Assembly: GCA_002104905.1 (NCBI GenBank)
Contig: MCFE01000067.1
Span: 124,335-188,334, forward strand
DNA from: Basidiobolus meristosporus CBS 931.73
Lineage: Eukaryota; Fungi; Basidiobolomycota
DNA length: 64,000 nt
Reading direction: 5' to 3'
Shown here: piece by piece, positions 1,122 to 50,527 of the stretch
Numbering within the stretch: the first letter of the stretch is position 1
Layout of the letters: every line of letters starts with the position of its first letter
Made by a program: the position numbers and the translations under genes
The notes under the pieces: model-generated
The model's database searches: none
The model's input: only the letters and a program-made list of their open reading frames with translations
What the model was told of the DNA's origin: nothing

Positions 1122-1953
1122 ATGTTTTCACCAAAATATCATGTACCCAGAACATGAAAATTTGATAAGTAGTTCAAACAGCCCCAGACTTTGCACGCAT
1201 ACTCTTGGGACCTTTCTAAGCCTATTTTATGTGTTTGCTCTGCCAAGACCATGTAAAAGTATAAATACCACTATAACATTCAATAAATCATCAAGTGAAA
1301 ACCACATAATCTACTTGTTCTCCCTATCACCTTCAATATAACCAAGACTCTTACCACAGATTATGAGCCCCAAGCTGTCACTCTCTGCAATGTCTACTAC
1401 TGCTATTACTGGAATTCTTCCCTCTGCTGAAAAGTTGGATGGATCTAACTACCAAGTGTGGAAGGTGAAGATGTAGATGCTGTTACAAGAAAGAGACCTT
1501 TGGGATATTATCATGGGAGAAGAATGCCCTCATAAAAATGTGGGAGAGGAATTCTTTAAGTACCAGACAAAAGAACAAAGTGCCCTTAACTGCATTTGCC
1601 TTAATGTCAAAGACAAACTAATTATTCAATGCTCAAGTGCAAAAATGGCAAAGAGGGCCTGGAAGACATTATAAGACACCTACCAGTCATGTTCTGCTGC
1701 CAAGAAAATGTATCTTAGATGAAAATTCTTGACTACAAAGATGCTGCCAGGAGAAGAAATGAAAAATCTTAATAACAGAATTACCCTGCTGGTGGATGAG
1801 ATGGAATCTGTGGACATACCAACTACTGATGAGGATGTGATAGTAACCATCCTTAATAGCCTGGTAGACAGGTTTCAGGGCCTTGTATCAGTCCTAGAGT
1901 CCGGCACTGCAGACCTGAACTTAAGTTATGTATATGGTGTTGCAATATTCTGA
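1122..1953 (+). mobile_element. Ty1/copia partial LTR, PBS and gag 5' fragment
   Basis: LTR-like end TTACCACA at 1351-1358, then PBS-like GATTATGAGCCC (1359-1370). Gag EKLDGSNYQVWKVKM*MLLQERDLWDII and MTTKMLPGEEM...TILNSL (copia gag/UBN2-like), with stops. Confidence 0.8.
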
Positions 1954-1959
1954 GGAGTA

Positions 1960-2627
1960 TTGGAAGTGATGTGGAGAACTAGAGGATTTACATGTTATTC
2001 ACTTGTAGATTTATTGATCAAAAGTATGGTATTTATACTTTTGATAAAGTAGAGGAAACAAACATGTAGAGTTTGTTAAGGAAGGTCCCAAGAATATGTG
2101 TGCAAAGTTTGGGGTCTTTTGGACGACTTTGAGAAAAATAATAATCTGGGTACCTGACAATTTGGTGAAAATATTCTAAGTAAATCCCGACAAGAAATCT
2201 AGTCAGGACAGAATGCTAATGACAGAATAAGATCTATGTGACTAAGTTAGCATGAATATTTAGGTGACAATTCAATAATTACAACATATGGAAGGCTCAT
2301 GCATGAAGAATTAGGAAAATTAAGCTCCAATAAGAAGGAATAAGATGCATTAATAAGCAATGATAACCAGCAAAGAAGATACCCAAGACCTTTTAAAGGC
2401 AATAGCAACCTGTTTTACAGCTACTGCAAAAGGAAAGGACACACATCAGACCAGTGCTTCAAAAAGAGTGATAGTCAGCAGAAAAAGCCTGAATAGGGAA
2501 ATGCTGCCACAACTGAAGATAGACTATGCATATCTGCACTAAATATGACCACAAACAAGGATTCTCAGACATGATATAGGGACTCTGGAGCATCTCAACA
2601 CTTTACACACCAAGAAGAACTTCTTAC
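1960..2627 (+). mobile_element. Copia LTR-like relic (opposite orientation) followed by gag zinc knuckle and protease remnant
   Basis: 1960-2285 resembles the 3060-3391 LTR and ends ATTACAACA. CSYCKRKGHTSDQC-like knuckle near 2410-2460; GACTCTGGAGCATCTCAACAC = DSGASQH (copia protease motif) at 2581. Confidence 0.7.
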
Positions 2628-30399: not shown

Positions 30400-30862
30400 A
30401 AAGTGATAACTAGATTTTTTTGAAAAGCCAATTTCAATCTTGCAACTGATCTACGAGTGTTTCTGTATATGACTTTGCATTGTATTTCCTATTTATAAAA
30501 TCGCAACTAATTCACCAATCTCTCCTTACCGACTTCTATGGAATTGTTGTAATAAATATACTACACTTTTTGGCCAAATCCCTACAATGCGGTTTCCCCT
30601 TATTTACCTGATAACTTACCCCTCTATTGATCCTCTAATCATGATCGAGTGTAGAGATGATAATCCGTGCCGGTTATCGTGCATATAAAGCAGGAGGAAA
30701 CGGTAGTGAAGTATTACTGTAGCCATGTACATAGATAAAGCCTGAGGATAGACAAATCTACAGCAGGCAGGGTGGGTAGAGCCTTGCATTTCCTGGCTAT
30801 AAGTAGGTTGCTCACTGTGAGGTTTTGACACACCGTTCTCGGAAGCAGCATCTTTACTCATC

Positions 30863-31237
30863 ATGAAGTTCATTCTTTCCTTGTTGACTGTGTCTTGTGT
30901 TATCTTGGCCACCATGGGTGCCCCATTGCCACTCGATGCTATGGTAGATGTTCATACCGGACCCACAAGCCCTTCCTCAGCCAATCCACCATCAGGTGCA
31001 GGTGCTGGAGGATGTGATGATATCCAAGCAAAGGTCAACGCACTTGGCCTTAACATCAAAGCAGTGGTGTGTCTGGGTGCCAAAGACTCATTGCCTGCTG
31101 AGGCGACTGCCCCACCAGCCAACCCACCCGCAGGTTGCCCAGATGTGGATGCCAAGATCAGGGCGCTAGGACTCAACATCCGAGCAGTTGTCTGCCTTCG
31201 AGATGGGATTCAGGTGTTTGCCGATGTAACGAACTAA
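30863..31237 (+). CDS. Small secreted two-repeat Cys protein, copy 1 (124 aa)
   Basis: Signal-peptide-like MKFILSLLTVSCVILATMG/AP; repeats GCDDIQAKVNALGLNIKAVVCL and GCPDVDAKIRALGLNIRAVVCL; TATAAG upstream; frame conserved across 7 copies. Confidence 0.9.
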   Translation: MKFILSLLTVSCVILATMGAPLPLDAMVDVHTGPTSPSSANPPSGAGAGGCDDIQAKVNALGLNIKAVVCLGAKDSLPAEATAPPANPPAGCPDVDAKIRALGLNIRAVVCLRDGIQVFADVTN

Positions 31238-31579
31238 TACTTGGACCATTGATCATTCATACTCATCATTGCTCAATAATATGGAATATCGTGACTGAAG
31301 GCAATACAATGCCAGAATAAACAACACATTGACATATCATTCAAATATAATCTTGCTTGATTATGCTGTAAAGGTACCGCTCATATGAGACGTGAGGCAG
31401 TTCAGCTCTTACAAATTGACAATTGAACAATCATCAATGGACGAGTAGCTCATTGTGACCGCACACCTTGGAGCAAGATGATCGACCAGTTTGAAGAGGA
31501 CGCTTAAGCATTTACCAGGCTGTAAAGCACACTGTCAACTGTATCTAGTGACTCTTGATTGAAAAGATCAAACATCTGA

Positions 31580-31651
31580 GGCTCAATGGTCTAGTAGTAT
31601 GATTCCTCGTTCGGGTCGAGGAGGTCCCGGGTTCAATTCCCGGTTGAGCCC
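31580..31651 (+). tRNA. tRNA-Pro(CGG), copy 1
   Basis: 72-nt cloverleaf: GGCTCAA/TTGAGCC acceptor, CCTCG-TTCGGGT-CGAGG anticodon arm, CCGGG-TTCAATT-CCCGG T arm; T-run terminator follows. Confidence 0.97.
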
Positions 31652-32102
31652 CTCATTTTACCTCACAATACGCTTATTAATAGTACTAAAATTGCAAAAA
31701 TTGCATATTTTAAGCCTGATTATCAATTCAGTTATATTTGAAGTGCTAGCTTAGCTCATAGAAACCAGAGAGTAGTCGAGTATAGAATGAACAGATAATG
31801 CGTTCTCATATATGGCAACAGATCAGAAATGTTGCTACATGCTCAAAATACACACGAGTACAGTTGATCCGTGCTTGTTTACCACAATTTCATCTCAATA
31901 ACACCTTTGAGAGGTGGAAATTGAAAAGAAGCAGGGGTAAATGGCTATGAGATGTAAGGGTATGAGCATATTGATGAGTGGTAGAGAGACAAATCGATTT
32001 CAGGCAGGATGAGTGCAGGGTTGCCAATGCCAACTATAAGTAGACTGACGCTTGCTACCAGATCTTCACTTACTATCACTTCGAGCTAATTCACTACTCA
32101 TC

Positions 32103-32477
32103 ATGAAGTTCATTCTTTCCTTGTTGGCTGTGTCCTGTGCAATCCTATCCACCATGGGTGCCCCATTGCCACTCGATGCTATGGTGGATGTCCATACCGG
32201 ACCCGCAAGCCCTTCCCCAGTCAATCCGCCGTCGGGCGCAGTTACTGGAGGATGCGATGATATCCAAGCAAAGGTCAACGCACTTGGCCTTAACATCAAA
32301 GCAGTGGTGTGTCTGGGTGCCAAAGACTCATTGCCTGCTGAGGCGACTGCCCCACCAGCCAACCCACCCGCAGGTTGCCCAGATGTGGATGCCAAGATCA
32401 GGGCGCTAGGACTCAACATCCGAGCAGTTGTCTGCCTTCGAGATGGGATCCAGGTGTTTGCCGATGTAACGAACTAA
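32103..32477 (+). CDS. Small secreted two-repeat Cys protein, copy 2
   Basis: As copy 1; ATG at 32103 (the track's upstream extension starts at a non-ATG codon). Confidence 0.9.
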   Translation: MKFILSLLAVSCAILSTMGAPLPLDAMVDVHTGPASPSPVNPPSGAVTGGCDDIQAKVNALGLNIKAVVCLGAKDSLPAEATAPPANPPAGCPDVDAKIRALGLNIRAVVCLRDGIQVFADVTN

Positions 32478-33214
32478 TACTTGGACCATTGATCATTCAT
32501 ACTCATCATTGCTCAATAATATGGAATACCATGACTGAAGGCAATACAATGCCAGAATAAACAACACCGACATATCATCCAATAACCGCATAGTTTGATA
32601 GTGTTCGTAAAGCATAGCAATATTATACTGGACGATACTAGAATACTACAATAGTAAGTAGCATTATTATACGATTCGGCCATACTCTCTTAGTTAAGGG
32701 ATTGGCTAATATTCAAGTCCATATATACGACTTCACAATGTGAATACCATGACTAGAGGCAAATTAAATTCCAGAATAAATAGCACATTGACATATCATC
32801 CAAATACAATCTTGCTTGATTGCACTGTAAAGGTACCTCTCAAATGTAGAATGGGGTAGTTCAACTCTTGCAAAATGATAATCAAATAATCATGGATGGA
32901 CGAATCGCTAATCGTCTTGAGAATTAACCCTGTTATGATGTTATGGAAGCAAAAAGTCATCTCTTACGCAGCATGGTGAAATACGATCAGCCTTTTTGAA
33001 AAGGACATTTATGCGATTGCTCTCATCGTGACAGATGAATCAAATGATTCCTCAGTGAATCAGTCTTCTGTTACGTACTGAAAGAGTAATGTCCTTTAAA
33101 GAGTACGGAAATAAATAACGTGTATGTTATCTCGTAGATTCGACGGGGTAGTTTAAGGATATCTTTTAAAAGGTTAGGATGGTGACTAGTAGAAATATAT
33201 TCAAAGTAATACTC

Positions 33215-33381
33215 GTTTCTACCGCTTTTCTTCTAACCAAACTTATTCTTTATTTGATTGTTTGATTGGTATTTATACCTTGTTATGAGTCTGGTGATTT
33301 GTCTCGTTTACTTTTTTTCCGAGGCTACTAAGCCGTCTTTGTATGCGTTGATGTCACTTAACATCGAGTGATTCCTTACTC
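33215..33381. repeat. Dispersed ~165-bp repeat (LTR-end-like), also at 51158-51317
   Basis: Shared blocks CTTCTAACCAAACTTA, TTTATTTGATTG, GATTGGTATTTATACCTT, GCGTTGATG.CACTTAACAT, CCTTACTC in both places. Confidence 0.75.
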
Positions 33382-33397
33382 GTAAACTACCATCGGA

Positions 33398-33469
33398 GGC
33401 TCAATGGTCTAGTAGTATGATTCCTCGTTCGGGTCGAGGAGGTCCCGGGTTCAATTCCCGGTTGAGCCC
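33398..33469 (+). tRNA. tRNA-Pro(CGG), copy 2
   Basis: Identical 72-mer to copy 1; T-run downstream. Confidence 0.97.
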
Positions 33470-34039
33470 ATCATTTTACTTCACTTTATGCTCTTCAATA
33501 TCTTTATTCGCACCTATGCAGCACCAGTGTATTAATGGGACAACATACAGTACATTAGTAGTACAGCATATCATGTGCCCGACAGTCAGATCATTAAAAT
33601 TTCGAATGTCAACTTAGTAAAGCATTAAATAACTGATGATTCGCTTTTGTGGGTAAAATGGTTTAACCATACTGATCAGTGTCGGTTCGAACATCTATTC
33701 TATGATATGGGTGTGCTGAGCTTCTACACATTTTAATATGATCCACGCATGGTAGACATTCATGAATGTCACTACATGCTCAAAATACACACGAGTACAG
33801 TTGATCCGTGCTTGTTTACCACAATTTCATCTCAATAACACCTTTGAGAGGTGGAAATTGAAAAGAAGCAGGGGTAAATGGCTATGAGATGTAAGGGTAT
33901 GAGCATATTGATGAGTGGTAGAGAGACAAATCGATTTCAGGCAGGATGAGTGCAGGGTTGCCAATGCCAACTATAAGTAGACTGACGCTTGCTACCAGAT
34001 CTTCACTTACTATCATTTCAAGCTATTCCACTACTCATC

Positions 34040-34414
34040 ATGAAGTTCATTCTTTCCTTGTTGGCTGTGTCCTGTGCAATCCTATCCACCATGGGTGCCC
34101 CATTGCCACTCGATGCTATGGTAGATGTCCATACCGGACCCACAAGCCCTTCCTCAGCCAATCCACCATCAGGCACAGGTACTGGAGGATGCGATGATAT
34201 CCAAGCAAAGGTCAACGCACTTGGCCTTAACATCAAAGCAGTGGTGTGTCTGGGTGCCAAAGACTCATTGCCTGCTGAGGCGACTGCCCCACCAGCCAAC
34301 CCACCCGCAGGTTGCCCAGATGTGGATGCCAAGATCAGGGCACTAGGACTCAACATCCGAGCAGTTGTCTGCCTTCGAGATGGGATTCAGGTGTTTGCCG
34401 ATGTAACGAACTAA
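34040..34414 (+). CDS. Small secreted two-repeat Cys protein, copy 3
   Basis: As copy 1. Confidence 0.9.
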   Translation: MKFILSLLAVSCAILSTMGAPLPLDAMVDVHTGPTSPSSANPPSGTGTGGCDDIQAKVNALGLNIKAVVCLGAKDSLPAEATAPPANPPAGCPDVDAKIRALGLNIRAVVCLRDGIQVFADVTN

Positions 34415-34756
34415 TACTTGGACCATTGATCATTCATACTCATCATTGCTCAATAATATGGAATATCGTGACTGAAGGCAATACAATGCCAGAATAAACA
34501 ACACATTGACATATCATTCAAATACAATCTTGCTTGATTATGCTGTAAGGGTACCTCTCATATGAGACATGAGGCAGTTCAGCTCTTACAAATTGACAAT
34601 TGAACAATCATCAATGGACGAGTAGCTCATTGTGACTGCACACCTTGGAGCAAGATGATCGACCAGTTTGAAGAGGACGCTTAAGCATTTACCAGGCTGT
34701 AAAGCACGCTGTCAACTGTATCTAGTGACTCTTGATTGAAATGTTCAAACATCTGA

Positions 34757-34828
34757 GGCTCAATGGTCTAGTAGTATGATTCCTCGTTCGGGTCGAGGAG
34801 GTCCCGGGTTCAATTCCCGGTTGAGCCC
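34757..34828 (+). tRNA. tRNA-Pro(CGG), copy 3
   Basis: Identical 72-mer; T-run downstream. Confidence 0.97.
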
Positions 34829-35279
34829 TTCTTTTTACCTCACAATACACTTATTAATGGTACTAAAATTGCTAAAGTTGCATATTTTAAGCCTGATTGT
34901 CAATTCAGTTATATTTGAAGTGCTAGCTTAGCTCATAGAAACCAGAGAGTAGTCGAGTATAGAATGAACAGATAATGCGTTCTCATATATGGCAACAGAT
35001 CAGGAATGTTGCTACATGCTCAAAATACACACGAGTACAGTTGATCCGTGCTTGTTTACCACGATTTCATCTCAATAACACCTTTGAGAGGTGGAAATTG
35101 AAAAGAAGCAGGGGTAAATGGCTATGAGATGTAAGGGTATGAGCATATTGATGAGTGGTAGAGAGACAAATCGATTTCAGGCAGGATGAGTGCAGGGTTG
35201 CCAATGCCAACTATAAGTAGACTGACGCTTGCTACCAGATCTTCACTTACTATCATTTCAAGCTATTCCACTACTCATC

Positions 35280-35654
35280 ATGAAGTTCATTCTTTCCTTG
35301 TTGGCTGTGTCCTGTGCAATCCTATCCACCATGGGTGCCCCATTGCCACTCGATGCTATGGTGGATGTCCATACCGGACCCGCAAGCCCTTCTTTAGCCA
35401 GTCCACCATCAGGTGCAGGTGCTGGAGGATGTAGTGATATCCAAGCAAAGGTCAACGCACTTGGTCTTAACATCAAAGCAGTGGTGTGTCTGGGTGCCAA
35501 AGACTCATTGCCTGCTGAAGCGACTGCCCCACCAGCCAACCCACCCGCAGGTTGCCCAGATGTGGATGCCAAGATCAGGGCGCTAGGACTCAACATCCGA
35601 GCAGTTGTCTGCCTTCGAGATGGGATTCAGGTGTTTGCCGATGTAACGAACTAA
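35280..35654 (+). CDS. Small secreted two-repeat Cys protein, copy 4
   Basis: As copy 1. Confidence 0.9.
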   Translation: MKFILSLLAVSCAILSTMGAPLPLDAMVDVHTGPASPSLASPPSGAGAGGCSDIQAKVNALGLNIKAVVCLGAKDSLPAEATAPPANPPAGCPDVDAKIRALGLNIRAVVCLRDGIQVFADVTN

Positions 35655-36718
35655 TACTTGGACCATTGATCATTCATACTCATCATTGCTCAATAATATG
35701 GAATATCGTGACTGAAGGCAATACAATGCCATAATAAATAATACGTTGCCATATCGTCTAAATAATGCACTGCTTTATTGCGTTTGCGAAGAGCCATGCG
35801 CTGAGGAAGTGAATTCGTATTTTAAAATATTGCCAGATTAGTTGGTCGAATATCATGAATACAAACAATGATGTTTTGATATTACGGCAATAAGCCTATA
35901 GCAGTATGATGGATTTTTAAATATGAGATTTAGTGACACAAAAATAGGAGTATTTCTTGACGATTTTGCTCTTCAGTGAGAATATCAGATAAGGCCGCCG
36001 TAGTAATCATGTAGATGCCATAACCACAAAGCCTGAATGCCTTATGCAGGATTCATAGCCAAATGACCAGGTAGATGAGGTGTATTCTTTGTTGGTCATC
36101 CGTGCTGATGGCATTTTTTGGGTTTCACATACCGAGATAAATCAGCGGTGTACGTGTGGCAACCTGATTCTTTGCACAACTTTGATGTAGGTCGGGGTAA
36201 GTGATACTTCACGTATATGTATGTGGTAAGAGGGTCGAGCAAAATTGAATGTGATGGTTCCTTGTTTGGGTTAAGGAGGCCCTGTGTTGCTCATTTAAAT
36301 TTCTAGCGTGACATATTGTACGTCCTGCATAATCTATCCAGTAAAATATAAAGTGCCAGCCTAACCCATGGAAGCAAGATAGTCCAGCTGATACGCTCTG
36401 TTGGAAAAAGTGACTAAACTCATTATGGGATACTGAATCAAGATCCTGGAGATCATATATGGCTGTGAAGCTAGAATATGCAGGTACACAATTCGATCGT
36501 GCCTATACGAACCAATTGTAGCTCAATAATACCTTTGAAAGCCAGAAATTGAAGAGAGGCAGGGGGAGTGACATTAAGTTGTAAGGATACCAACATATTG
36601 ATGGGTGGTAGCGACACATCGATTTCCGACAGGATGAGTTCAGGGTTGATACAACCAAATATAAGCGGATTGTAGAGGTGTTTAACCATCATTCCCTCAA
36701 ACAACATCTAGACTCATC

Positions 36719-37096
36719 ATGCAGTTCATTCTTTCTTTGTTGGCTGTGTCTTGTGCCATCTTGGCCACCATGGGTGCTCCCTTGCCACTTAACGCTATGG
36801 TGGATATCCATACCGGGCCCGCTGGCGCCCTGACACCCAGCAGCCCGCAACCAGGTGCAGGTACTGTAGGATGTGATGATATCCAAGCAAAGGTCAACGC
36901 ACTTGGCCTTGACATCAAAGCGGTGGTGTGCCTGGGTGCCAAAGACTCATTGCCTGCTGAGGCGACTGCCCCACCAGCCAACCCACCCGCAGGTTGCCCA
37001 GATGTGGATGCCAAGATCAGGGCGCTAGGACTCAACATCCGAGCAGTTGTCTGCCTTCGAGATGGGATTCAGGTGTTTGCCGATGTAACGAACTAA
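36719..37096 (+). CDS. Small secreted two-repeat Cys protein, copy 5 (125 aa, diverged 5' half)
   Basis: MQFILSLL..., linker GPAGALTPSSPQPGAGTV; 3' half nearly identical to the other copies. Confidence 0.9.
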   Translation: MQFILSLLAVSCAILATMGAPLPLNAMVDIHTGPAGALTPSSPQPGAGTVGCDDIQAKVNALGLDIKAVVCLGAKDSLPAEATAPPANPPAGCPDVDAKIRALGLNIRAVVCLRDGIQVFADVTN

Positions 37097-37473
37097 TACT
37101 CGGACCATTAATCATACATACTCATCATTGCTTGATAATAAGAATACCATGACTAGAGGCAATACAATATCAGAATAAATAATATATTGCCATATAATTC
37201 AAATACATAATTGTTTAATCATGCCGTAAAGGTACTTCTCGAATGTAAGTTGGGACTGTTCAGCTCTTGCAGAAGGACAATCCAATATTCATCAACGTGT
37301 GCGTAGCCCGTCATGTTTAAAATTAATCCTGCTATGATATTATAGCAGCAAGAAACCGTTTTATGCACTGCCTGGTGCAATATTATCGGTCTGATGTGAA
37401 AGAGTGATTACTGTATTATACTACCTAATGATGGATGAAAAAAAATTCCTCACCGAAATCTTCATGCATCCAA

Positions 37474-37545
37474 GGCTCAATGGTCTAGTAGTATGATTCC
37501 TCGTTCGGGTCGAGGAGGTCCCGGGTTCAATTCCCGGTTGAGCCC
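37474..37545 (+). tRNA. tRNA-Pro(CGG), copy 4
   Basis: Identical 72-mer; T-run downstream. Confidence 0.97.
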
Positions 37546-38115
37546 TTACTTTTACCTATCCATACACACTTCAATATCGTTATTCACACCCATATAGTAC
37601 CAGTATACTATTGGGACAACACATAGTATATCACTAGCACAATATATTACCTGCTTGACGGTTGGGTCAGTAAAATTTCAAATGCCAGTTTAGCTCATAG
37701 AAGCCATGTAGCATAGTTGAATATTAAAAATAAAAGACTAATATGATTTCAGGTAAGATAAACGACTTCGACCACATGCAGACTAATATCAGGTCAAACT
37801 TCTGTTTGATGATGAATTAGCACATACTGAAGTCGGATTCATGTACGGATCAAGACCGAAAATGCAGGTGTGCACATTATATCGTATTTAAAAAACGATA
37901 TTTTTATTTTAATGGTGCCCTTATAAGGTGGGGTTTGAAAGAAGCAGGGATGGATGGCTATGGGATGTAAGGATATGAGCATACTAATGGGCAATAGTGA
38001 GATAAAGCGATCTCAGACAGGATGAGTGCAGGATTGCTACTGCCAACTATAAGTAGACTGACGCTTGCTACCAGATCTTCACTTACTATCATTTCAAGCT
38101 ATTTCACTACTCATC

Positions 38116-38490
38116 ATGAAGTTCATTCTTTCCTTGTTGGCTGTGTCCTGTGCAATCCTATCCACCATGGGTGCCCCATTGCCACTCGATGCTATGGTGG
38201 ATGTCCATACCGGACCCGCAAGCCCTTCTTTAGCCAGTCCACCATCAGGCACAGGTACTGGAGGATGCGATGATATCCAAGCAAAGGTCAACGCACTTGG
38301 CCTTAACATCAAAGCAGTGGTGTGTCTGGGTGCCAAAGACTCATTGCCTGCTGAGGCGACTGCCCCACCAGCCAACCCACCCGCAGGTTGCCCAGATGTG
38401 GATGCCAAGATCAGGGCGCTAGGACTCAACATCCGAGCAGTTGTCTGCCTTCGAGATGGGATCCAGGTGTTTGCCGATGTAACGAACTAA
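38116..38490 (+). CDS. Small secreted two-repeat Cys protein, copy 6
   Basis: As copy 1. Confidence 0.9.
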   Translation: MKFILSLLAVSCAILSTMGAPLPLDAMVDVHTGPASPSLASPPSGTGTGGCDDIQAKVNALGLNIKAVVCLGAKDSLPAEATAPPANPPAGCPDVDAKIRALGLNIRAVVCLRDGIQVFADVTN

Positions 38491-39420
38491 TACTTGAACC
38501 ATTGATCATTCATACTCATCATTGCTCAATAATATGGAATACCGTGACTAGAGGCAATACAACACCAGAATAAACATTGACATATCATCCAATAACAGCA
38601 TAGTATAAATATAATAGATTATATTAGAATACTACAGTAGCAAGTAGCGGTTTGATAGATAAGGATTTAGCGAATACTCAAGTACATACATTCGGCTTCT
38701 TCGCCGTGAATTGCCACGAAATATAAGCTATAATGGTCGCTTCTTTGCTCAATATAACGCAAGTCATATTTAAGCCTCCTTCCCCAAGATTCGTAGCTGA
38801 AATATAGTACAAGAAATCTTTTGTATGTATCGTACTACTGTGAACAAATTTCTAATAGACGGGCTTTAGCTAGAGTAAACCGATTCTTAGTGGGCTGCTT
38901 TATTATGGTAAATGATACTTTGTTAATGGCTCCTCATCCTGGTCCTAAATCCAATTCTCGGTTATTTTAGTTGGACTATGAAGAAAAAGATCAAATTCCC
39001 TGCATTCAATACATGAAAATTTAGGAGGAAGAGAATAGAAGGTAAGATTGCTATACTATTATCGGTATAAATCGAGGGTAAATATATATATATAGTGTAT
39101 ATAGGAGACTGAATTCACCATCATACATAGCACATTTACTGAAAATGATACATAGGTATATCAAAGCTGGAAATATGCAGATAGCCAGTAGGATCATCAA
39201 GACGATTTGATAGCAATAATACCCATAACCTTAAACAGTGAAAGGAGGCAGGAGTGAATACCTAAGAGATGTAAGGATCCGAATATATTGCTGGGTACTA
39301 TAGAGAGGCTAAAATATTTCAAGCAGGATGCGTGCTGGGTAGGAAAACTGACTATAAGTAGTCTGCTAGTTTTCACAATGTGCCTAACGATCATCCTCTC
39401 ATACAGCTACTCCATTCATC

Positions 39421-39780
39421 ATGCAGTTTATTCTATCTTTGTTGGTCGTGTCCTGTGCTATCTTGACCACTATGGGCGCCCCACTACCACTTAATGCTGT
39501 GGTAGATATCCACACCGGAACGGCTGTACCCTCAGCTCCCACCGGTGCTCAAGGATGTAGTGATATCCAAGCAAAGGTCAACGCACTTGGCCTTAACATC
39601 AAAGCAGTGGTGTGTCTTGGAGCCAAAGACCCATTGCCTGCTGAGGTAACTGCCCCACCAGCCAACCCACCTCCAGGTTGCCCAGATGTGGATGCAGAGG
39701 TCAGGGCACTAGGACTCAACATCCGAGCAGTCGCTTGCCTTCGAGATGGGATTCATGTGTTTGCCGATATAACGAACTAA
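39421..39780 (+). CDS. Small secreted two-repeat Cys protein, copy 7 (119 aa, most diverged intact copy)
   Basis: Shorter linker GTAVPSAPTGAQ; both repeats retained; second repeat ends AVACL. Confidence 0.88.
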   Translation: MQFILSLLVVSCAILTTMGAPLPLNAVVDIHTGTAVPSAPTGAQGCSDIQAKVNALGLNIKAVVCLGAKDPLPAEVTAPPANPPPGCPDVDAEVRALGLNIRAVACLRDGIHVFADITN

Positions 39781-40180
39781 TATCTAGGTCATTAATTATT
39801 TTTATGGGATTATATACATGCGTCTAATACCTTAATACCAATAAATACGTATGTCACGCCAATTATCTTTAGTCACAATTTCCAGAATATGGTAGCAATG
39901 TAAGTAAGATGGCAAGGGACTGATACTGTATTGTGATTTCGGAATATAATTTTTGCCGCACTTTTTGGAAAGTTGGCCCATAAATAATGAATTTGTACAC
40001 ATTACAATGATGATACTACTCCCAATAGTTGGAAACTAACTCTCTTTAATCTCACTATTCGAGAATTTTGGTTGGGACTGCAGCAGAGGAAGTGGGTGTA
40101 TACATATAGATGTACAATATTCTGATCAGCATCAAGCAGCCTAGAATGCTGTGAATTTTCAAACTAATTCATTAATCATC

Positions 40181-40558
40181 ATGAAGCTCATTTTATCCTT
40201 GTTGACTGTATCTTGTGCTATATTGACCACCATGGATGCTCCATTGCTACTCAATGACATGATGGATATTACACGAGGGCCATAAGTCCCTCTTCTCTAG
40301 CCAACCTACCATCAAGCATAGATGCTGAAAGATGCGATGATATCTAAACGCAGGCCAACAAACTTAGTCTAGGTATCAAAGCAGTTGTGTATTTGAATGC
40401 CAAAAGACCCAATACCAGCTGAGGCGACTACCCCACCAGCTAACTTACCCCCAGGTTGCCCAGATGTGAATGCCAAGGCCAGGGCATTATGACACAACAT
40501 CCGAGCAGTTGCCTGCCTTCGAGATGGGATTCAAGTGTTTACTGATGTAACGAACTAA
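40181..40558 (+). pseudogene. Dead copy 8 of the small secreted protein
   Basis: ATGAAGCTCATTTTATCC...GATGTAACGAACTAA aligns to the family. A frameshift gives MKLILSLL...DITRGP*; further in-frame stops (ATC TAA, TTA TGA); no recognisable family promoter upstream. Confidence 0.88.
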
Positions 40559-42807
40559 TACTTAGACCACGGATCATTTATACCTATCATTGCTCAATAA
40601 TATGAAATAGCGTGCTTAGAGAAAGCTATTGCCATAATAAATGATCCATTGTCATATCGTCTAAATACAATCTCGCTTGGTTATGCTGTAAAGGTACCTC
40701 TCAAATGTAAAGCAGGGTAGTTCAGCACTTACAAATTGATATCCAGACAATCAAGCATGAATGAGTTGCTCATCATGTCAATAATATATTCTGTGTTGAT
40801 GTTGTGGTGGCACAAAACTATTTCTTGTGCAGCATGAAGCAACATGATCAGCCAGTTTGAAGAAAGTGCTTCAGTGACCACTGTATTGTGTTGCATCTTG
40901 ATATATGTATCAATTCCATCACAGTATTAGTGCGCCTGAGGTAACAGTCTGGCAGCGCAAGAGTTGGAATTATGGATGTTGCTGGAGCTATTTGGAACCT
41001 TGAAGTGCGTCAGGGCCACAGAATAGTATATGGCTTTATTCTTAGTAATGCTGCTAGGAATTGTACCTATAATGATATGACAAAGATCAGCTTAAAGTCT
41101 GAAGCTTGGCATCTGAATAACTCGTATTGCTGATGCACAAGTACAAATTCATAGCTAAGTAGGTAACTGTAGCAGCCAAGGTGTACAGAAAGCAAGCAAA
41201 CATATAGCTCATGTATAGCGGAGATGAGAAATGGGAGGCCATATAAAGTAGATTCTAAGTCAATAATCTCTGGCGCAGCCTTTGAATTGATCTGTCCTCC
41301 AAACAGGTCTCCTACAATGGGCATATACCTTAGAGTAATAGATCCTTGGCTAGAACTATAGTTAGTGGTCAAAGCCTGCAGCAAGCTCAATTCTAGTGAG
41401 CAAGCTACTTTGATGAGTCTCATGAATCATTAGTCAATAGATATCAAAAGTTAAATATGATCAACCTGAGCCTGTCATATGGTATAGGTAGGTTCGCTAA
41501 AGTTTTTGCCAAATGGAAATACGTGCTTTTACCAAGTAATAGACAGTAGATGTATTTGAGGAAGGATTTAATCTACATGCTCAACATTGACTAAATGAAC
41601 CAGAATAGCTTCGCAATATTACCAAATACCAACCAAAAATCAGGTAGGTGGTCTGTAAAACAGTTACCAAGCAAGGCAACCAATAAGGAGTGCTTTTAGG
41701 AAGAAAAGCCATGGGATTTAGGCGGTGGTTACTCTGGAGCGGAGTTCTATTCCACTCACCAAGTTGGATAAACATTTGGATCTCTCGGGTAGCAGAGATG
41801 TATCTGGTTCACTAGTGCAGGAAAAATGATCTTTGAAAGGCTTTTCAGATGGACTCATTTCCTAACTGGATAACCAATCTCATAGCCTGATCTATATCTC
41901 CGATCACTATTTTGTTTGTGGCTCACCAATCCTGACCAGGCTGCCCAATTAAGCTATTAAGGCTTCGCCCAAAATAGCATATTTTCTCAGCGTAGATTGC
42001 AGCTAGCTGGTTCAAAGTCTCTTCCACTGATGGCAACTCCACTAGTCTATATTTTAAGCCCCATAACAACGCAGATATACTATTATGTAATCCACCAAAA
42101 ATGACAAATCACAACATACTATTCAAGGGAGCATCAGTTTATCCATATGTTATACTTTAACATCATCGAAGTCATGTTTCAATTTGTCGCTCCTTATGGC
42201 ACTGCTTAATCCATTATCCGACACATATGCGGCAAATAGTCTTTGAATGGATTGGTACTAGAGCCATAGAATGTCGGTATTGTTCAACCTTATGGGAAAA
42301 GTAAGCCTGGTTTCAACCTTCTTAAAGCCACCTTTCTATTATCTTAGTCCAGCAGGATTTACATTTCGGAGGATATTCGGAGATTTCAGGTAAGTAATGT
42401 CCGCCAAGGTATGGGTACTTTTTGTTTATATTCAAGAGTCATGAGCATTAATTTCCTGTTCTGCAACACACTCGACTCTCAATTTTTATCATATGAACAA
42501 ACCCTAGTAAACAAATAGGTTTATCCGAATCCAATATTTTAAGCCACTGAACTCCTTCCAAGCCTAATTCTATTAGGAGGCCATTTACCGGGATGGTTTC
42601 TCCAAACTAAAAGCTAAGCCAAATTAGGCAATCATCATCGGAAATATACCAAGGTAATCGGCATCACAACTATACTCCACAATCGGTGGACAAGATCCTC
42701 CAGAAGAACATCATCAACATATTCCAGAATCAAGTAAACATTAGATTTATTGACAAACGCATTCTACAAATGTACTGAGCAATCACTCTTATATGCAAGG
42801 TGGGCTT

Positions 42808-44220
42808 CTATGCCTGTGCAATGGATTCGGGTTTGACCTTAGGATCCTCCTCATCTTCGTTACAGGTCTCCTTGACATTTCTAGCAAGAATCAACGTGAA
42901 TGGGAAACTGATCACCAAGAGACTCCAAGCAACAATGAATTCAGCAATGTAAGGGGCTTTCACTGCGTCGATTCTCCAAGCAATAGCAGCACCAGCAGAC
43001 TGGATACCCTTGTAGTAGCCGCTGTAACGACCCAGCTGACTGGAATCATTGGTCATAGTACCCATAATCCAATAGGCATAAGATTGAGTAGCTGCATCAA
43101 GTAACCCGTAGCAACAGTAAAGGAACCACCGGGGCCAGAAAAATGAGCGGTCACGAATGAAGTCGTATTTTTGGTACATGCCATCATGGTGTAAAGAGTA
43201 GCGGCTGTATTGGGCTTGCATACCCAAACCGCCACCCCAAATAATCATGATACAGGCCCAAACACCACATAAGCCATAGATGGCTCTAGTACGACGGCTA
43301 AGGCCCTTGTAATCAAGGAAGGAACCAATGATCATGGCACCAATCATCTGGAAGAACCAATAAAAGGCATTATTGAATGAGTTGGAACGATTGTCAAACA
43401 ATGCAGAATTGACATCGTTAAACTGATAAGTGTAAAACCAATTGGAGGCGATGGAAACTGGAGTCAAGAGAAGCATGTTCTTATCCATGAAGAGGAGCAA
43501 GATTGCCTTGGCCTCTGTGAAGGCATTCTGAAACTTTTCCACTTGCACACGAGAGCCATCATTACGAACGATTTTTTCAGGCGGCAGGAGTAATATGCCC
43601 ATAGCAGCACCGCAGCACATAATGCACAGGAAGGCAACATATGTAGAGTAACTAGCACCACCTCCAGTGTTATGGTAGTCAAGGCCAAAAGGAATCCAGG
43701 CGCCCATAACGCCTCCCATATTGAAGATGACCCAGAAGACAGCCACACATTTTCCTTTGTCTGCTTCATTCGGATAGGACATCATGATAACACCTTGCGC
43801 AGTCCAAAGAATACCTGCTCCAATGCCAAGAATAGCCGAGGTGGTGATGACGAATGCTTCAGCGTTTGGAGTATTGTAAATCACGCCGTCGATTTTATAA
43901 GCAGTTTTCCGAACATACAGCAGAGAGCCAGTATAAAGAGCATAGGTGACTCCACCACCCAATAGACAACTACGGATACCAAAATAATTGTAGAAAGCGC
44001 CACCAAAGACACCAAAGACGGCAAAGGTACAGTAAAGAGCCACGTTTCCATTGGTTGCGGTATTACCTGCTTGCTGACCACCGGCACCCATACCGTTGAT
44101 ACAGTTGAACATGCCAGGGCAACAGAAGCAGACAAAACCAATCAGAACCACTTGGGTCATAGGACTATTGTAGCGAAATTTGCCAATTCGGATCTTTGAC
44201 AGATCGTAATTAAGCGCCAT
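42808..44220 (-). CDS. UNC-93-like MFS transporter (NOPE1/Ngt1-related family), intronless
   Basis: 470 aa with many hydrophobic segments; YNSPMTQVVLIGFVCFCCPGMFN...GGGQ-like N-terminus, GAGILWTAQGVIMMSYP, GYYKGIQSAGAAIAW. Confidence 0.88.
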   Translation of the reverse strand: MALNYDLSKIRIGKFRYNSPMTQVVLIGFVCFCCPGMFNCINGMGAGGQQAGNTATNGNVALYCTFAVFGVFGGAFYNYFGIRSCLLGGGVTYALYTGSLLYVRKTAYKIDGVIYNTPNAEAFVITTSAILGIGAGILWTAQGVIMMSYPNEADKGKCVAVFWVIFNMGGVMGAWIPFGLDYHNTGGGASYSTYVAFLCIMCCGAAMGILLLPPEKIVRNDGSRVQVEKFQNAFTEAKAILLLFMDKNMLLLTPVSIASNWFYTYQFNDVNSALFDNRSNSFNNAFYWFFQMIGAMIIGSFLDYKGLSRRTRAIYGLCGVWACIMIIWGGGLGMQAQYSRYSLHHDGMYQKYDFIRDRSFFWPRWFLYCCYGLLDAATQSYAYWIMGTMTNDSSQLGRYSGYYKGIQSAGAAIAWRIDAVKAPYIAEFIVAWSLLVISFPFTLILARNVKETCNEDEEDPKVKPESIAQA

Positions 44221-45243
44221 GGTAATTTGCGAGTTGGATGAAATGATAATGTGATGGGGCTATAACATACAAAATGCTCCTATTTATACTCATCTGTTGA
44301 GACTAGCTTCTGGCTTTTGTGGCGATGGCTGATGACTGATGGCTTTTTCCCACCAGAACTAGACGTACAGCTTTTCCAAAAAGGACTAGACGTACATATC
44401 CCCGCGCTCCATTCCCAAATCTATCTGAAATTCCCAGATCTGGGGTTGAATGTGTATTTTTGGCATTTCCCGTGTGAGATTATCTGGGAGTGCTGCTTCA
44501 AGAAATTTCTTCCCGTTTTGGCTTAAAGTAAGATTCTTCCTTTGATGCTGTTAAGTAAGCCACTTCGGGCCTGGCCATTTTAAGCTAATTTTCAAATCCC
44601 GCAAATCAAAACTACCAGCAAACTAAAGTCGTTTCTATCATGATGTTGATTTCATTTGCATGAACCCTAAATATAAAGAAAGTGCAAATCATGATGCCAA
44701 TACTGCTATGCATTATTTCGTGCTTTTCAAGAAATCTGCGTCAAGTCCATGATTTAAATCATGCATATTTTGTACTACTAAAGGTATATTTGTAACAATC
44801 ATACAGACTGCTAATAATCATCTCAACACATGCTAGTAAGTATATAGTGAGTTTATTGTTAGCTTGAAGCTCAGTATTTTATAAGAACCTAGTTTTACTT
44901 AACTGCCAAAATGGACTTTTGCATGTTGGCACATTGAGTTGATATTAACATCATTCAGTGAACATTGTACAAGAAGTGGTACAAATGTCTTGAGAAAGGT
45001 TCGTACTATCATAAGTAGAAGCTGGCTCTTTTGGACATGCTTGAAGTATCAGATAACATTATATATTCCAATCTAATGTGCAATAGAATACTAGTCATAA
45101 ATATATGAATAATGAAATGTAGCGCAAAATAGCCTCAAAGGTTTTCCTATTTGAAGAAAATAACATATAGATTTGGGAGTGTTTGCAAGTACTTGCCTAC
45201 CATCAGATGTTGCAATGGCCATATTGCAAATACTCAGCGGAAA

Positions 45244-45579
45244 TGTTGTAAGAGTTTTGGCAGTGTTAGAAGTGACTGAGAGAACAAGTCGGTTATGTGG
45301 TTTTCACTTAATGATTTCTTCAATGTCATAGTGGTATCTATACTCTCACATGATCTTGACCAAAAAACACAGTATATGCTTAAAAAGGTCCCAAGAACAT
45401 GTGTGCAAGGTTTGGGACTGTTTGGACAGCTTTGAGAAATTTCATGTTCTTGGTACCTGATGTTTTGGTGAAAATGTTCTTAGTAAATCCCAACAAGGAA
45501 TTTTGTTAGAATTCTCTAGACTATTATCTAACTGACTAAGCTAGGTGAGCGTTAAGGTGCAATCATGAAACTTACAACA
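45244..45579 (-). mobile_element. Solo LTR of the copia family seen at 3060-3391
   Basis: Perfect 9-bp terminal inverted repeats TGTTGTAAG...CTTACAACA; internal similarity to 3060-3391; flanks GGAAA/AGAAG give no clean TSD. Confidence 0.85.
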
Positions 45580-46454
45580 AGAAGTTGCTAACTGTTACAT
45601 TAGCCAACAATTGCAACCTGCAGCAAGTAAGCTCCTAATCAGAATGGATACTCTTTGAAAGATACTCAGGCATTCAGGGTATATGTTAAGTACTAGAAGT
45701 AACCAGAATACCACAAGGCTCCATTCCTAGGTAGAAACTAATAACTATGAGTATCTTTACCTCAGTATTGATAAAATAGCAGCTGCTAGGATGATTGCAA
45801 TATTCACATTGTTGATTTCAAATGTCACTTGCCATGTCTGTATTTGCATTTCTGATTGCAATCTGGTAGCATTAACATTTCACAAATTGCACTACAAAAT
45901 GACTATGCTGTGTGTGCTGCTCCAAAAGTCCAAGTATAAGCTATAAAATGCACACAGTCAATACAAACAAATCCAATCAGCACAAGAATGCAACTTGCAT
46001 CATCTGTGCAAATTTAAATGGACAGTGCTATAGTCCATATGAGAAATCTCAAAGCTGGAATATGTTGGATCTTTAGCTGGAATTCTAGCAATATTCTGAT
46101 GGTATTTTGCTGCTATTCTGCCAGTGTTTCTGCATCAAATTTTGAAATGCAATTTTTGGTGAAAGTAATGAGCAGCTGATTACCAAATTTTGTAGGAATG
46201 CTGCTCAGTCTAGTCTCACTTGGAAAAGATGTCTGCTTGTCTGCTGTAAAGCTAGTACCTGAGATGCTGAAAGTTGTCACCATTGGATAATGTGGAGTTC
46301 AGCTGTTATAGAAATATTATTATGCAGGCCAATTCCAACTTTTTTACTTCAGAAGTACTGGTGTGTTGAGCTTGCACTGCTCTCCTATTCATATTATTGA
46401 AAGTAGAGTAATACAATCTGCTATATTTTCTGTACTACTGGAAGTAGGTGGTCT

Positions 46455-46800
46455 TATAAGAGCTTTGGAGATATTGGAAGTGATTGAGTAAATAATTGGA
46501 TTATGTGGTATTGATCCAATGCTTGAATGAGTACAAGATAGTATCTATACTTGTATATGGTAGTAGCCAGAAAAAGAAAACCTATTATGCTTATCAAGGT
46601 CCCAAGTGCATATGTCCAAAGCTTGGGTTGTTTAGATCATTGATCAAAATTTCATGTTGTGCGTACATGCTGCTTGAGTGAAAATATTCAGAGTAAGTCT
46701 CAGCAAGGAATTAGGAACAAGTTCTTAAAGACTTGTGGACTATGCTCAAGGAGATTAAGCTGGATAAATGTTGAGTTGTAGTTACTAAATTTGCAACATA
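46455..46800 (-). mobile_element. Degraded LTR of the same copia family
   Basis: TAAGAGCTTTGGAGATATTGGAAGTGATTG...GGTCCCAAG...TTGCAACA matches the LTR consensus with many substitutions. Confidence 0.65.
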
Positions 46801-47426
46801 TAGTGCATTTGTTCTCATAAATAGTGCAGGTTCCTTCTGGTAGTGTTGCCCTTGCTAACACACTTTAAAAATAGTGACACCTTCCCACAAATGCTATAGC
46901 ACAATAGTAATATCACCAGAATACTGTAGTGCTTGCCACTAAGGATACTAACAGAGAAACAGGGCTCAGCTCTTGGGGGTAGAAGACACAAAGCACTGCG
47001 TTATTATTCTCATCCTCTATCAGTTTATACTGCACACTATATTTTCAAGACATACAGGTGTTAATGCTACCTGACCTAATATGAGAATGACTAATGGTTA
47101 GTTCAGTGGTAGGTCTCAAATAATGATGGTTTAAGAATGTTGATGACCTAACCATTACAAGTGTTATTGTTGGGGCCTGAGATCCAGTTAGCATTAACAA
47201 CAAGTCTAGTACCCTCCATTGCACTACCTTGCTAAGCCTGGACCAATGGTAAAGAATACTTAAAAGGCCTGAGGTGGGAGAAGAAAGGCAGAGTGAGTTA
47301 TTGGTATTAATTTCCAGACATAGCTTGGACCCTATCTTCACCCAACCCCCCTAACTCCCTTTGAAAAAATCACTCTTAATATCCTTTCTCTATTTGGGCA
47401 AAAAGTTAAAACACAAGAGAGAGATA

Positions 47427-48760: not shown

Positions 48761-50527
48761 ATGAAATCCTTGCTTTCTTTGTTTGTGATTGCACTGGCAG
48801 CAACATCCATCGAGGGGGCTCCGAAGTACAGCTATGACCAATGTGGCTCTCGATACGGCACCTGTGCACCAGGCTTGTGCTGCAGTAAATGGGGCTCCTG
48901 CGGTTCCACCTCGGAATACTGCTCTACTGGTTGCCAAACTAAATTCGGCAGCTGTAGTGGTAGTGCTTCAAAACCAACCACCACAGTCCCAACTCCGCTG
49001 AGACAGCTCAATGAACAATGCGGTTCCGGGTTCGGTTCATGCGCATCAGGATTATGCTGCAGTGAATGGGGCTGGTGCGGCTACTCCTCCGACCACTGCA
49101 CTGGAGGCTGCCAAAAACAGTTTGGTACTTGCAGTGCCAGTAGCACAACGGCCGCTACTCTCCCCACCACTACGAAGTCCCCCACCCCAACACCATTGAA
49201 GCAACTTAATGAGCAATGTGGAGCCAATTTAGGTACTTGTGCACCAGGCTTGTGTTGTAGTGAATGGGGTTGGTGCGGCTACTCCTCCGACCACTGCACT
49301 GGAGGCTGCCAAAAACAATTTGGCACTTGCAGTACTGGCAGCACAATGACCACCACTTCCACTTTCATCACGAACTCCCTTTCTCCAACTCCATTGAGGC
49401 AGCTAAATGAACAGTGCGGCGCCAGTGATGGTACCTGCGCGCCAGGATTATGTTGCAGTGAATGGGGATGGTGTGGATACTCATCTGATCATTGTACTGG
49501 AGGCTGTCAGAAGCTTTTTGGTACTTGTAGTGAGGGAGCAACCACCATCATCTCCTCAACAACCTCTGATACAAGCTCTAGCACTATTCAACCCACTTCT
49601 ACCGCCACCTCCACTACAGCCACCCCGACTCCGACTGGACTAAGATACCTCGATGAACAGTGTGGTTCCAAATACGGCTCCTGTGCACCTGGTTTGTGCT
49701 GTGGCCAAACTGGTTACTGTGGCTACACCTCAGGACACTGCTCTGCAGGCTGCCAAAAGGATTTTGGAATTTGCGACAATAAAATAGAGGCAGAGGTGAT
49801 TACCGGATGTAAAGCACCCGGAACTTTCGCAGTTACCTACGATGATGGACCAAGTGTTCTGACTTCAGGGCTGTTGGATTATCTGGACGAAGTGAAAGTG
49901 AAGGCCACCTTCTTTGTTAATGGGAACAACAGAAAGAATGGTGACACTGGAAACCCAATGTTAACCATCTACGAGCTCGCTGATGTTGTCCGACGCGCCT
50001 ACAACTCCGGACATCAAATCTGTTCTCACACCTGGGCTCACACTGACATTATTACCGTGAACGAGGAAGAGGTCGTCTATGAAATGACCAGACTGAATCA
50101 CGCCTTCAGTAAAATCCTCGGCAAGGTTCCCACTTGCATGAGACCCCCCTATGGCGATACCGATGGGCCATCACGCAAGATTCTTTACAAAATGGGCTAC
50201 ACTGTTGTCAGCTGGAATGTGGATCCAGTTGATTGGAATCCGGTGAATTCCATTGATGAGATGTACCAAGAGTATATTGATCAGACTGGATCTACCAGCA
50301 CTAAAGTTGGCAAATTCATCTCCCTGAACCATGATGTGTGGAATACTACTGCTGACTTCAGGCCCGAGAGCTATCCCAAGACCATTCCACTTGCTAAGCG
50401 ATCTATCGATTATTTGTTGGAAAGAGGTTGGAAGGTAGTTAACCTTGCCGAGTGCTTGCAAAGCCCGCCGCTATACCGTGATCCCAACCCTTCGGATAGT
50501 AAATGCGGCACAAAAGCCTGTGTTTGA
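48761..50527 (+). CDS. Secreted chitin deacetylase (CE4/NodB) with five N-terminal CBM18 hevein domains, intronless
   Basis: Signal peptide; five QCG..G.C..GLCC...G.CG....C..GCQ..FG.C modules with Thr/Pro/Ser linkers; CE4 motifs TYDDGP, HTWAH, RPPYG, WNVDPVDW, SLNHD. Confidence 0.93.
   Translation: MKSLLSLFVIALAATSIEGAPKYSYDQCGSRYGTCAPGLCCSKWGSCGSTSEYCSTGCQTKFGSCSGSASKPTTTVPTPLRQLNEQCGSGFGSCASGLCCSEWGWCGYSSDHCTGGCQKQFGTCSASSTTAATLPTTTKSPTPTPLKQLNEQCGANLGTCAPGLCCSEWGWCGYSSDHCTGGCQKQFGTCSTGSTMTTTSTFITNSLSPTPLRQLNEQCGASDGTCAPGLCCSEWGWCGYSSDHCTGGCQKLFGTCSEGATTIISSTTSDTSSSTIQPTSTATSTTATPTPTGLRYLDEQCGSKYGSCAPGLCCGQTGYCGYTSGHCSAGCQKDFGICDNKIEAEVITGCKAPGTFAVTYDDGPSVLTSGLLDYLDEVKVKATFFVNGNNRKNGDTGNPMLTIYELADVVRRAYNSGHQICSHTWAHTDIITVNEEEVVYEMTRLNHAFSKILGKVPTCMRPPYGDTDGPSRKILYKMGYTVVSWNVDPVDWNPVNSIDEMYQEYIDQTGSTSTKVGKFISLNHDVWNTTADFRPESYPKTIPLAKRSIDYLLERGWKVVNLAECLQSPPLYRDPNPSDSKCGTKACV

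Follow-up and report, generated by a model that had tools for sequence, protein, structure and literature searches.

Why should identical proline transfer RNA (tRNA) genes lie between successive copies of a gene for a small secreted protein? The question is raised by a locus of Basidiobolus meristosporus CBS 931.73 on contig MCFE01000067.1, from which a 64-kb stretch (hereafter the window, in whose coordinates positions are given unless another contig or locus is named) was analyzed. Between the first and the last gene copy, four tRNA-Pro(CGG) genes alternate irregularly with eight members of one protein family. The results point to an ordinary lineage-specific tandem array whose repeat unit chanced to contain a tRNA gene, a reading to which we give a probability of about 0.7.

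Organization of the array

Family proteins were located on NCBI assembly GCA_002104905.1, and the locus found there (L004) is identical base for base to positions 28167-48490 of the window. The array runs on the + strand throughout and comprises seven intact open reading frames (ORFs) of 119-125 aa plus one pseudogene. A first-pass annotation, made from this DNA alone, had described seven secreted-protein genes, a pseudogene and four tRNA-Pro(CGG) genes, all on the + strand, and this layout was borne out by the ORFs, ARAGORN and Rfam. The tRNA genes occupy the spacers P1-P2, P2-P3, P3-P4 and P5-P6, and four of the eight spacers are without a tRNA. No other RNA gene was detected by Rfam between 30 and 42 kb, and ARAGORN found no fifth tRNA in the 64 kb. 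The features, with the source of each assignment in brackets, are as follows.

30855..32561, + strand: block P1-t1-P2, 1707 bp, duplicated as 34032-35738 (self-comparison)
30863..31237, + strand: P1, 124-aa secreted-protein gene, first copy (ORF)
31580..31651, + strand: t1, tRNA-Pro(CGG), flank class 1, 343 bp past the stop codon of P1 and followed within 10 nt by a T4 run (ARAGORN, Rfam)
32103..32477, + strand: P2, 124-aa copy (ORF)
33060..33390, no strand assigned: extra sequence, about 330 bp, between the conserved upstream flank (32871-33059) and t2 (no match to the long terminal repeat, LTR, of the other contig)
33387..33390, + strand: CTAC, 11 to 8 nt 5' of t2, the target site duplicated around the insertion in L006 (contig comparison)
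33398..33469, + strand: t2, tRNA-Pro(CGG), flank class 2 (ARAGORN, Rfam)
34040..34414, + strand: P3, 124-aa copy (ORF)
34757..34828, + strand: t3, tRNA-Pro(CGG), flank class 1, duplicate of t1 (ARAGORN, Rfam, self-comparison)
35280..35654, + strand: P4, 124-aa copy (ORF)
36296..36558, + strand: surviving part of the tRNA-downstream flank in IG4, a spacer without a tRNA (nhmmer, E 3.8e-10)
36719..37096, + strand: P5, 125 aa, a more divergent copy with DNA about 84-90% alike (ORF)
37474..37545, + strand: t4, tRNA-Pro(CGG), flank class 2, downstream flank homologous to that of t2 (ARAGORN, Rfam)
38116..38490, + strand: P6, 124-aa copy (ORF)
39421..39780, + strand: P7, 119-aa copy, the most diverged among the intact copies (ORF)
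40181..40558, + strand: P8, pseudogene copy with several in-frame stops (translation)
40730..40910, + strand: surviving part of the tRNA-upstream flank past P8, marking the array's right edge (nhmmer, E 3.5e-12)

The window ends where the contig ends, 23 kb past the array. This nearness would be compatible with the subtelomeric position that had been suggested for the array, but only a single (TTAGGG)3 was found at that end.

Duplicated blocks and the regular spacing

The distances first reported for the array proved exact: each tRNA gene is followed by the next ATG after 523, 642, 523 and 642 bp, respectively, and P1-P2 and P3-P4 are each 1240 bp apart. Self-comparison aligned the P1-t1-P2 block with P3-t3-P4 at 96.8% identity over 1707 bp, without a gap. 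The repeated values of 1240 and 523 bp thus arise because a two-unit block was duplicated. Downstream of t2 and t4 the flanks share 81% of their sequence over 220 bp (E 9e-47), and the two 642-bp distances recur because t2-P3 and t4-P6 are an older duplicate pair. The exact periodicity thus follows from two events, the recent duplication of two units and an older one of a block consisting of a tRNA gene and a protein gene.

Spacer anatomy and the origin and loss of the tRNA genes

All spacers follow one plan. The first 100-215 bp are conserved, form the 3' end of the transcript and contain AATAAA near +100, and the last 190-280 bp are conserved as a promoter block with a TATA-like CTATAAGTAG near -65. 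The center is variable, and it is there that the tRNA gene is located. Upstream of P1 the sequence is unique past about -50, yet the TATA-like CTATAAGTAG is kept near -65.

The tRNA flanks had been assigned to two diverged classes, and global alignment agreed, with t1 and t3 96% alike and values of 50-61% between the classes. Alignment of 200 bp upstream and 300 bp downstream nevertheless revealed collinear homologues in all four cases, the difference between class 1 and class 2 consisting of deletions. Class 1 and t4 have in common, in the same order, the upstream 200 bp, positions -19 to +22, a 40-bp motif and the promoter block. Since the flanks are collinear in all four spacers, the tRNA gene was already part of the ancestral unit. 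Furthermore, a profile of the flanks (nhmmer) also matched two regions without a tRNA gene, namely IG4 and the region after P8. In IG4 some 530 bp of single-copy sequence (35765-36295) have taken the place of the tRNA, its upstream flank and about 35 nt, and after P8 the homology to the upstream flank ends about 35 nt short of the expected tRNA start. Because pieces of the flank are kept at both places, the tRNA was lost there later.

Structural change is mostly concentrated beside the tRNA position. The clustering of insertions and replacements at the tRNA position or immediately 5' of it goes a little way toward the proposed role of the tRNA genes as recombination hotspots. No duplication boundary or conversion tract, however, lies at the tRNAs, which weakens that proposal.

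Identity of the tRNA genes

Complete identity of the four copies over 72 nt, in spite of diverged flanks, had been reported for the locus, and both ARAGORN and the flank alignment confirmed it. Each copy scored 56 bits against Rfam RF00005, compared with a gathering score of 29, and folds into a cloverleaf with its anticodon. A T4 or T5 run, a putative terminator, follows within 10 nt of the 3' end in all four copies. With aligned flanks only 50-61% alike between classes, the chance of zero difference over 72 nt is below 1e-15.

In the short-read contigs of two runs that contain the locus, word depth was about 195-260 in the spacers and about 47,000 in the tRNA bin (summed contig depth is not equal to copy number), and many different sequences continue from the tRNA borders, indicating that the same 72 nt is present at many other loci. 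The tRNA-Pro sequence was also present, with zero or one difference, in runs that lack the array. The identity of the four copies is thus attributable to constraint on a working multi-copy RNA polymerase III (Pol III) family, the normal state for such families. From the contrast between genes and flanks we infer that the copies are held identical by purifying selection, perhaps with conversion.

Codon supply was considered as a role for these tRNA genes and rejected. The proline codons of the family are CCA (53), CCC (16), CCT (13) and CCG (3), and with CCG at only 3 of 85 a CCG-reading tRNA does little for these genes.

A second set of contigs and an LTR-like insertion at t2

Two further contigs of the same assembly cover parts of the locus, each at about 98.7-98.9% identity: MCFE01001353.1 (L006) matches 32147-39346 and MCFE01001178.1 (L005) matches 37513-47414 of the window. 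Together they preserve the unit order from P2 to P7 and three identical tRNAs, t2-t4, and they look like the other haplotype of the locus. The sole large difference inside the array is a 310-bp insertion (L006:1247-1556) whose end lies 11 nt before t2. It has the form TG..CA, with 8-bp inverted ends TGTTATGA and TCATAACA, and CTAC (or ACTAC) is duplicated around it as a target duplication of 4-5 bp.

Ty3-type elements use the stretch just upstream of tRNA genes, where their insertions are recognized by TG..CA ends, short inverted ends, a 4-5 bp duplication and a distance of at most 20 bp from the tRNA (PMC6673722), and related tRNA-targeting behavior occurs in other fungi and amoebae (PMC6101501, PMC4600332). 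The L006 insertion shows all of these features. Its landing at -11 suggests, indirectly, that t2 is occupied by Pol III factors. No further copy of the 310-bp element was found in the window or the fetched loci, to which the search was limited.

Kinship with this LTR was considered for the extra spacer sequence of IG2 (33060-33390), IG4 (35765-36295) and IG6 and was rejected, as the scores were no better than those of shuffled controls. The extra sequence of these three spacers was at single-copy depth in the read contigs. Outside the array, L005:8251-9225 (about 45 kb in window coordinates) contains two inverted copies of a 350-bp repeat also seen at window positions 1937-2288, a mobile-element polymorphism of the second contig.

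Recombination, conversion and selection

High-identity blocks have their limits at -8 relative to the ATG, at +84 relative to the stop codon, or at a distance of 170-300 bp on the downstream side of the tRNAs. A further exchange was evident in the copy at the P4 position of the second contig (L006:3450-3824, corresponding to window 35280-35654). Its flanks are P4-like, with one difference each, while its variable region and core show one and zero differences from P1 (30863-31237) and seven and two from P4. This copy is the product of a recent non-allelic gene conversion within the gene, differing between the haplotypes. As both the block boundaries and the conversion tract are found at or in gene bodies, the recombination substrate is the long gene-body homology and not the 72-bp tRNA.

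Among P1-P6, codons 53-125 are nearly without synonymous differences and codons 21-52 are variable, with an overall ratio of nonsynonymous to synonymous substitution rates (dN/dS) of 0.2-0.4 among the array genes. The core is homogenized even at synonymous sites, and the genes are real protein genes under purifying selection.

The protein family

The family consists of small secreted proteins with a hydrophobic N-terminus, four invariant Cys and a two-repeat structure. Profile searches returned no homologue outside Basidiobolus, and Pfam gave no family match at E<=1 except chance rows. The AlphaFold model is of moderate confidence and, with a mean predicted local distance difference test (pLDDT) score of 62 and about 75-79 in the core, has one helix and one strand in each Cys-bracketed repeat, and no meaningful structural match was obtained in PDB or the ESM Atlas. 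The UniRef label of one paralogue (P0005), hydrophobin, is not supported, given four Cys rather than the eight-cysteine pattern and the lack of a Pfam hydrophobin match.

The public gene models of P1-P4 and P6 start at Met18 (107 aa) and so are without the signal peptide. The full 124-aa ORFs begin 51 nt upstream of Met18, consistent with P5, P7 and all B. ranarum homologues. Separately, in a run of another sample under the same species label, window positions 38073-38147 (5' untranslated region and start of the signal peptide) had roughly 10-20 times the depth of other contigs, and that run is without the array at 95% likeness; the sample probably carries a diverged multi-copy family. Beyond the array, positions 48761-50527 encode a secreted 588-aa protein with five cysteine-rich repeats of chitin-binding type and a polysaccharide-deacetylase-like C-terminal part, as judged by eye.

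Relatives in Basidiobolus ranarum

One subfamily is a head-to-head pair found in both B. meristosporus (L001) and B. ranarum (L002) in the same neighborhood, i.e. GH9, GATA factor, the pair and an SMI1-like gene; neither pair has a tRNA. The other subfamily unites the array copies with seven B. ranarum genes, which form a clade of their own (99/100 support), indicating that the expansions were independent in the two species. The seven B. ranarum genes are dispersed, each being a single gene on one of seven contigs with different neighbors. Neither a tandem array nor a tRNA-Pro was present at the family loci fetched from B. ranarum. Homologous arrays lacking tRNAs in a relative had been named in the first-pass annotation as a sign of pure hitchhiking; B. 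ranarum supplies half of this, having the family without tRNA-Pro, though also without a tandem array.

An orthologous locus was sought in B. ranarum by way of the UNC-93/MFS gene, which with a CDP-diacylglycerol synthase gene flanks the array, but the best homologues were only 63-65% identical and B. meristosporus paralogues were closer, so that orthology is doubtful. No family gene or tRNA lies beside the B. ranarum UNC-93/MFS homologues.

The tRNA genes that do accompany the family in B. ranarum are a tRNA-Leu(CAG), 951 bp past the stop in L003, and a tRNA-Arg(CCT), 1188 bp past the stop in L009, each on the same strand as the family gene; no others were found in about 92 kb of fetched B. 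ranarum sequence. At L003:1811-2379 and L009:7662-8120 a shared repeat of about 370 bp, 79% alike, stands just in front of each tRNA. In L009 it is 16 nt from the tRNA, in L003 its orientation is inverted, and it probably represents a mobile element that targets tRNA genes.

In L009-L014, at about -90 and -60 from the family genes, the B. ranarum copies share the conserved motif taggtagggagtacct and a TATAAATAG box, which make a candidate for a promoter element specific to the family. That a tRNA-targeting element had spread the protein gene by retroposition was considered and rejected, given that A-tails are absent from the dispersed copies and that promoter elements 5' of the transcribed part are common to them. 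The shared promoter element and TATA box argue for DNA duplication instead.

Favored explanation and its rivals

Same-strand units, collinear homologous spacers, nested high-identity blocks and non-allelic conversion, features of a tandem array made by unequal crossing-over, are found at this locus. We propose that the ancestral unit measured about 1.2-1.4 kb and would have comprised the secreted four-cysteine gene, its 3' end, a co-oriented tRNA-Pro(CGG) and the promoter of the next copy. In B. meristosporus this unit would have multiplied through unequal crossing-over and segmental duplication, the tRNA presumably travelling as a passenger. The tRNA was later lost from some spacers, as the flank pieces kept in IG4 and after P8 show. 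As tRNA genes attract retroelements just upstream, seen here once as a polymorphism, the tRNA-proximal spacer is the most changeable part.

Some observations weigh against this explanation. The haplotype-like contigs showed no copy-number difference over P2-P7, and thus no sign of ongoing unequal crossing-over. Furthermore, two of the nine B. ranarum copies with enough downstream sequence have a same-strand tRNA within 1.2 kb, and the rough post-hoc chance of both tRNAs lying downstream on the same strand at no more than this distance is about 0.004-0.02. These values are suggestive of a non-random link between the family and tRNAs in B. ranarum, unlike the prediction of pure hitchhiking.

Such a link would be expected under functional coupling, in which a co-oriented tRNA, bound by TFIIIB and TFIIIC, would serve as a roadblock terminator or insulator between packed copies and be retained by selection. 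It would keep RNA polymerase II (Pol II) from reading through into the promoter of the following copy, or protect the copies against silencing that spreads from the chromosome end close by. TFIIIB-bound yeast tRNA genes do roadblock Pol II about 65 bp upstream (PMC5052057). Wherever a tRNA is present in the array, it is on the same strand as the genes and is placed after the likely poly(A) signal (about 100 nt past the stop) and before the promoter block that follows; the dispersed L003 and L009 genes have other same-strand tRNAs about 1 kb downstream; and the LTR insertion at -11 suggests Pol III factors on the tRNA gene. We consider coupling unlikely all the same. Intact P5 and P7 are preceded, and intact P4 and P6 followed, by tRNA-less spacers, so a copy can remain intact without the tRNA, and seven of the nine B. 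ranarum copies as well as both head-to-head pairs are without a tRNA. In yeast, tRNA genes are also known to silence their surroundings, repressing nearby Pol II promoters, which would predict the opposite effect.

A wider form of the idea, which we hold to be improbable, is that family genes have recurrently been kept with a co-oriented downstream tRNA (Pro-CGG here; Leu-CAG and Arg-CCT in B. ranarum), either as terminator or insulator for strongly expressed, packed genes near a chromosome end or because tRNA-linked retroelement hot spots seeded new copies. If the link were selected, the locus would offer a compact natural system for tRNA terminators and insulators outside yeast; on present evidence this is unlikely.

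Very unlikely, in our judgment, is that the tRNA itself drove the amplification, either through fork stalling and template switching or through selection for more tRNA-Pro(CGG), with the protein gene as passenger. tRNA genes are known fork barriers and rearrangement breakpoints are often tRNA-bounded (PMC2817429, PMC2675101), and the right edge of the array falls about 35 nt before the expected tRNA position. Yet half of the spacers have no tRNA while the protein genes are under purifying selection and homogenized, the boundaries of the high-identity blocks are not at tRNAs, the family expanded in B. ranarum too without tRNA-Pro, and four extra copies add little to a highly multi-copy tRNA family.

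Independent arrival of the tRNAs, as heads of tRNA-derived short interspersed elements (SINEs) or as separate insertions into the spacers after the array had formed, is highly improbable. Between-class similarity in blastn is strongest right around the tRNA, but beyond the 72 nt the short stretch next to it does not exceed the remainder of the spacer in similarity. Target duplications and A-tails are absent, and the position and orientation of the tRNA are constant in every tRNA-bearing unit. SINE-like separate arrival was rejected because the flanks on both sides are collinear in all four spacers. Scarcely credible, finally, is an assembly artefact in the array or its copy number: copies 93-97% alike and separate haplotype-like contigs ending inside the array might invite mis-assembly, but P2 to P7 recur together with t2-t4 on two further contigs, at about 98.7-98.9%, and in short-read contigs the spacers are at single-copy depth and the shared gene bodies at about 4-6 times that, although these runs are perhaps of the assembly's own sample and so not independent support.

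Comparison with known systems

The locus resembles several known systems in part. It shares with the yeast tRNA insulators and roadblocks (PMC5052057) the position of the tRNA between co-oriented Pol II genes near a chromosome end, and differs in that several array copies do without the tRNA. With Ty3-type landing at tRNA genes (PMC6673722, PMC6101501, PMC4600332) it has in common a TG..CA element with a 4-5 bp duplication 11 nt upstream, present in one contig only; the difference is that L006 has just a solo LTR-like piece.

Identical tRNA genes on one strand at regular distances are also the mark of tandem tRNA arrays, as described in oomycetes (PMC9584435). The units of those arrays are tRNA-only and near-identical, whereas here a 375-bp protein gene is part of the unit, spacers are 50-97% alike and the tRNAs number four. 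The B. meristosporus units do not form a pure tRNA tandem array, as each has a protein gene, the spacers are diverged and four of eight are without a tRNA. Tandem tRNA gene arrays are also known in frogs, Entamoeba and plants.

The locus also resembles tandem gene-family arrays formed by unequal crossing-over with concerted evolution, e.g. the effector and tRNA families of Phytophthora infestans (PMC9584435), with which it shares one-strand head-to-tail copies, nested blocks, a homogenized coding core, a decayed edge copy and a position near a chromosome or contig end. Through this locus the tRNA-Pro(CGG) family gains four members, and an undescribed family of secreted proteins that is restricted to the genus gains eight. 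What sets it apart is that the B. meristosporus unit also carries a Pol III gene, left in half of the spacers. On the favored explanation, a tandem array with a passenger tRNA, the locus illustrates the way in which a Pol III gene may be amplified along with a protein array and then shape that array by attracting retroelements.

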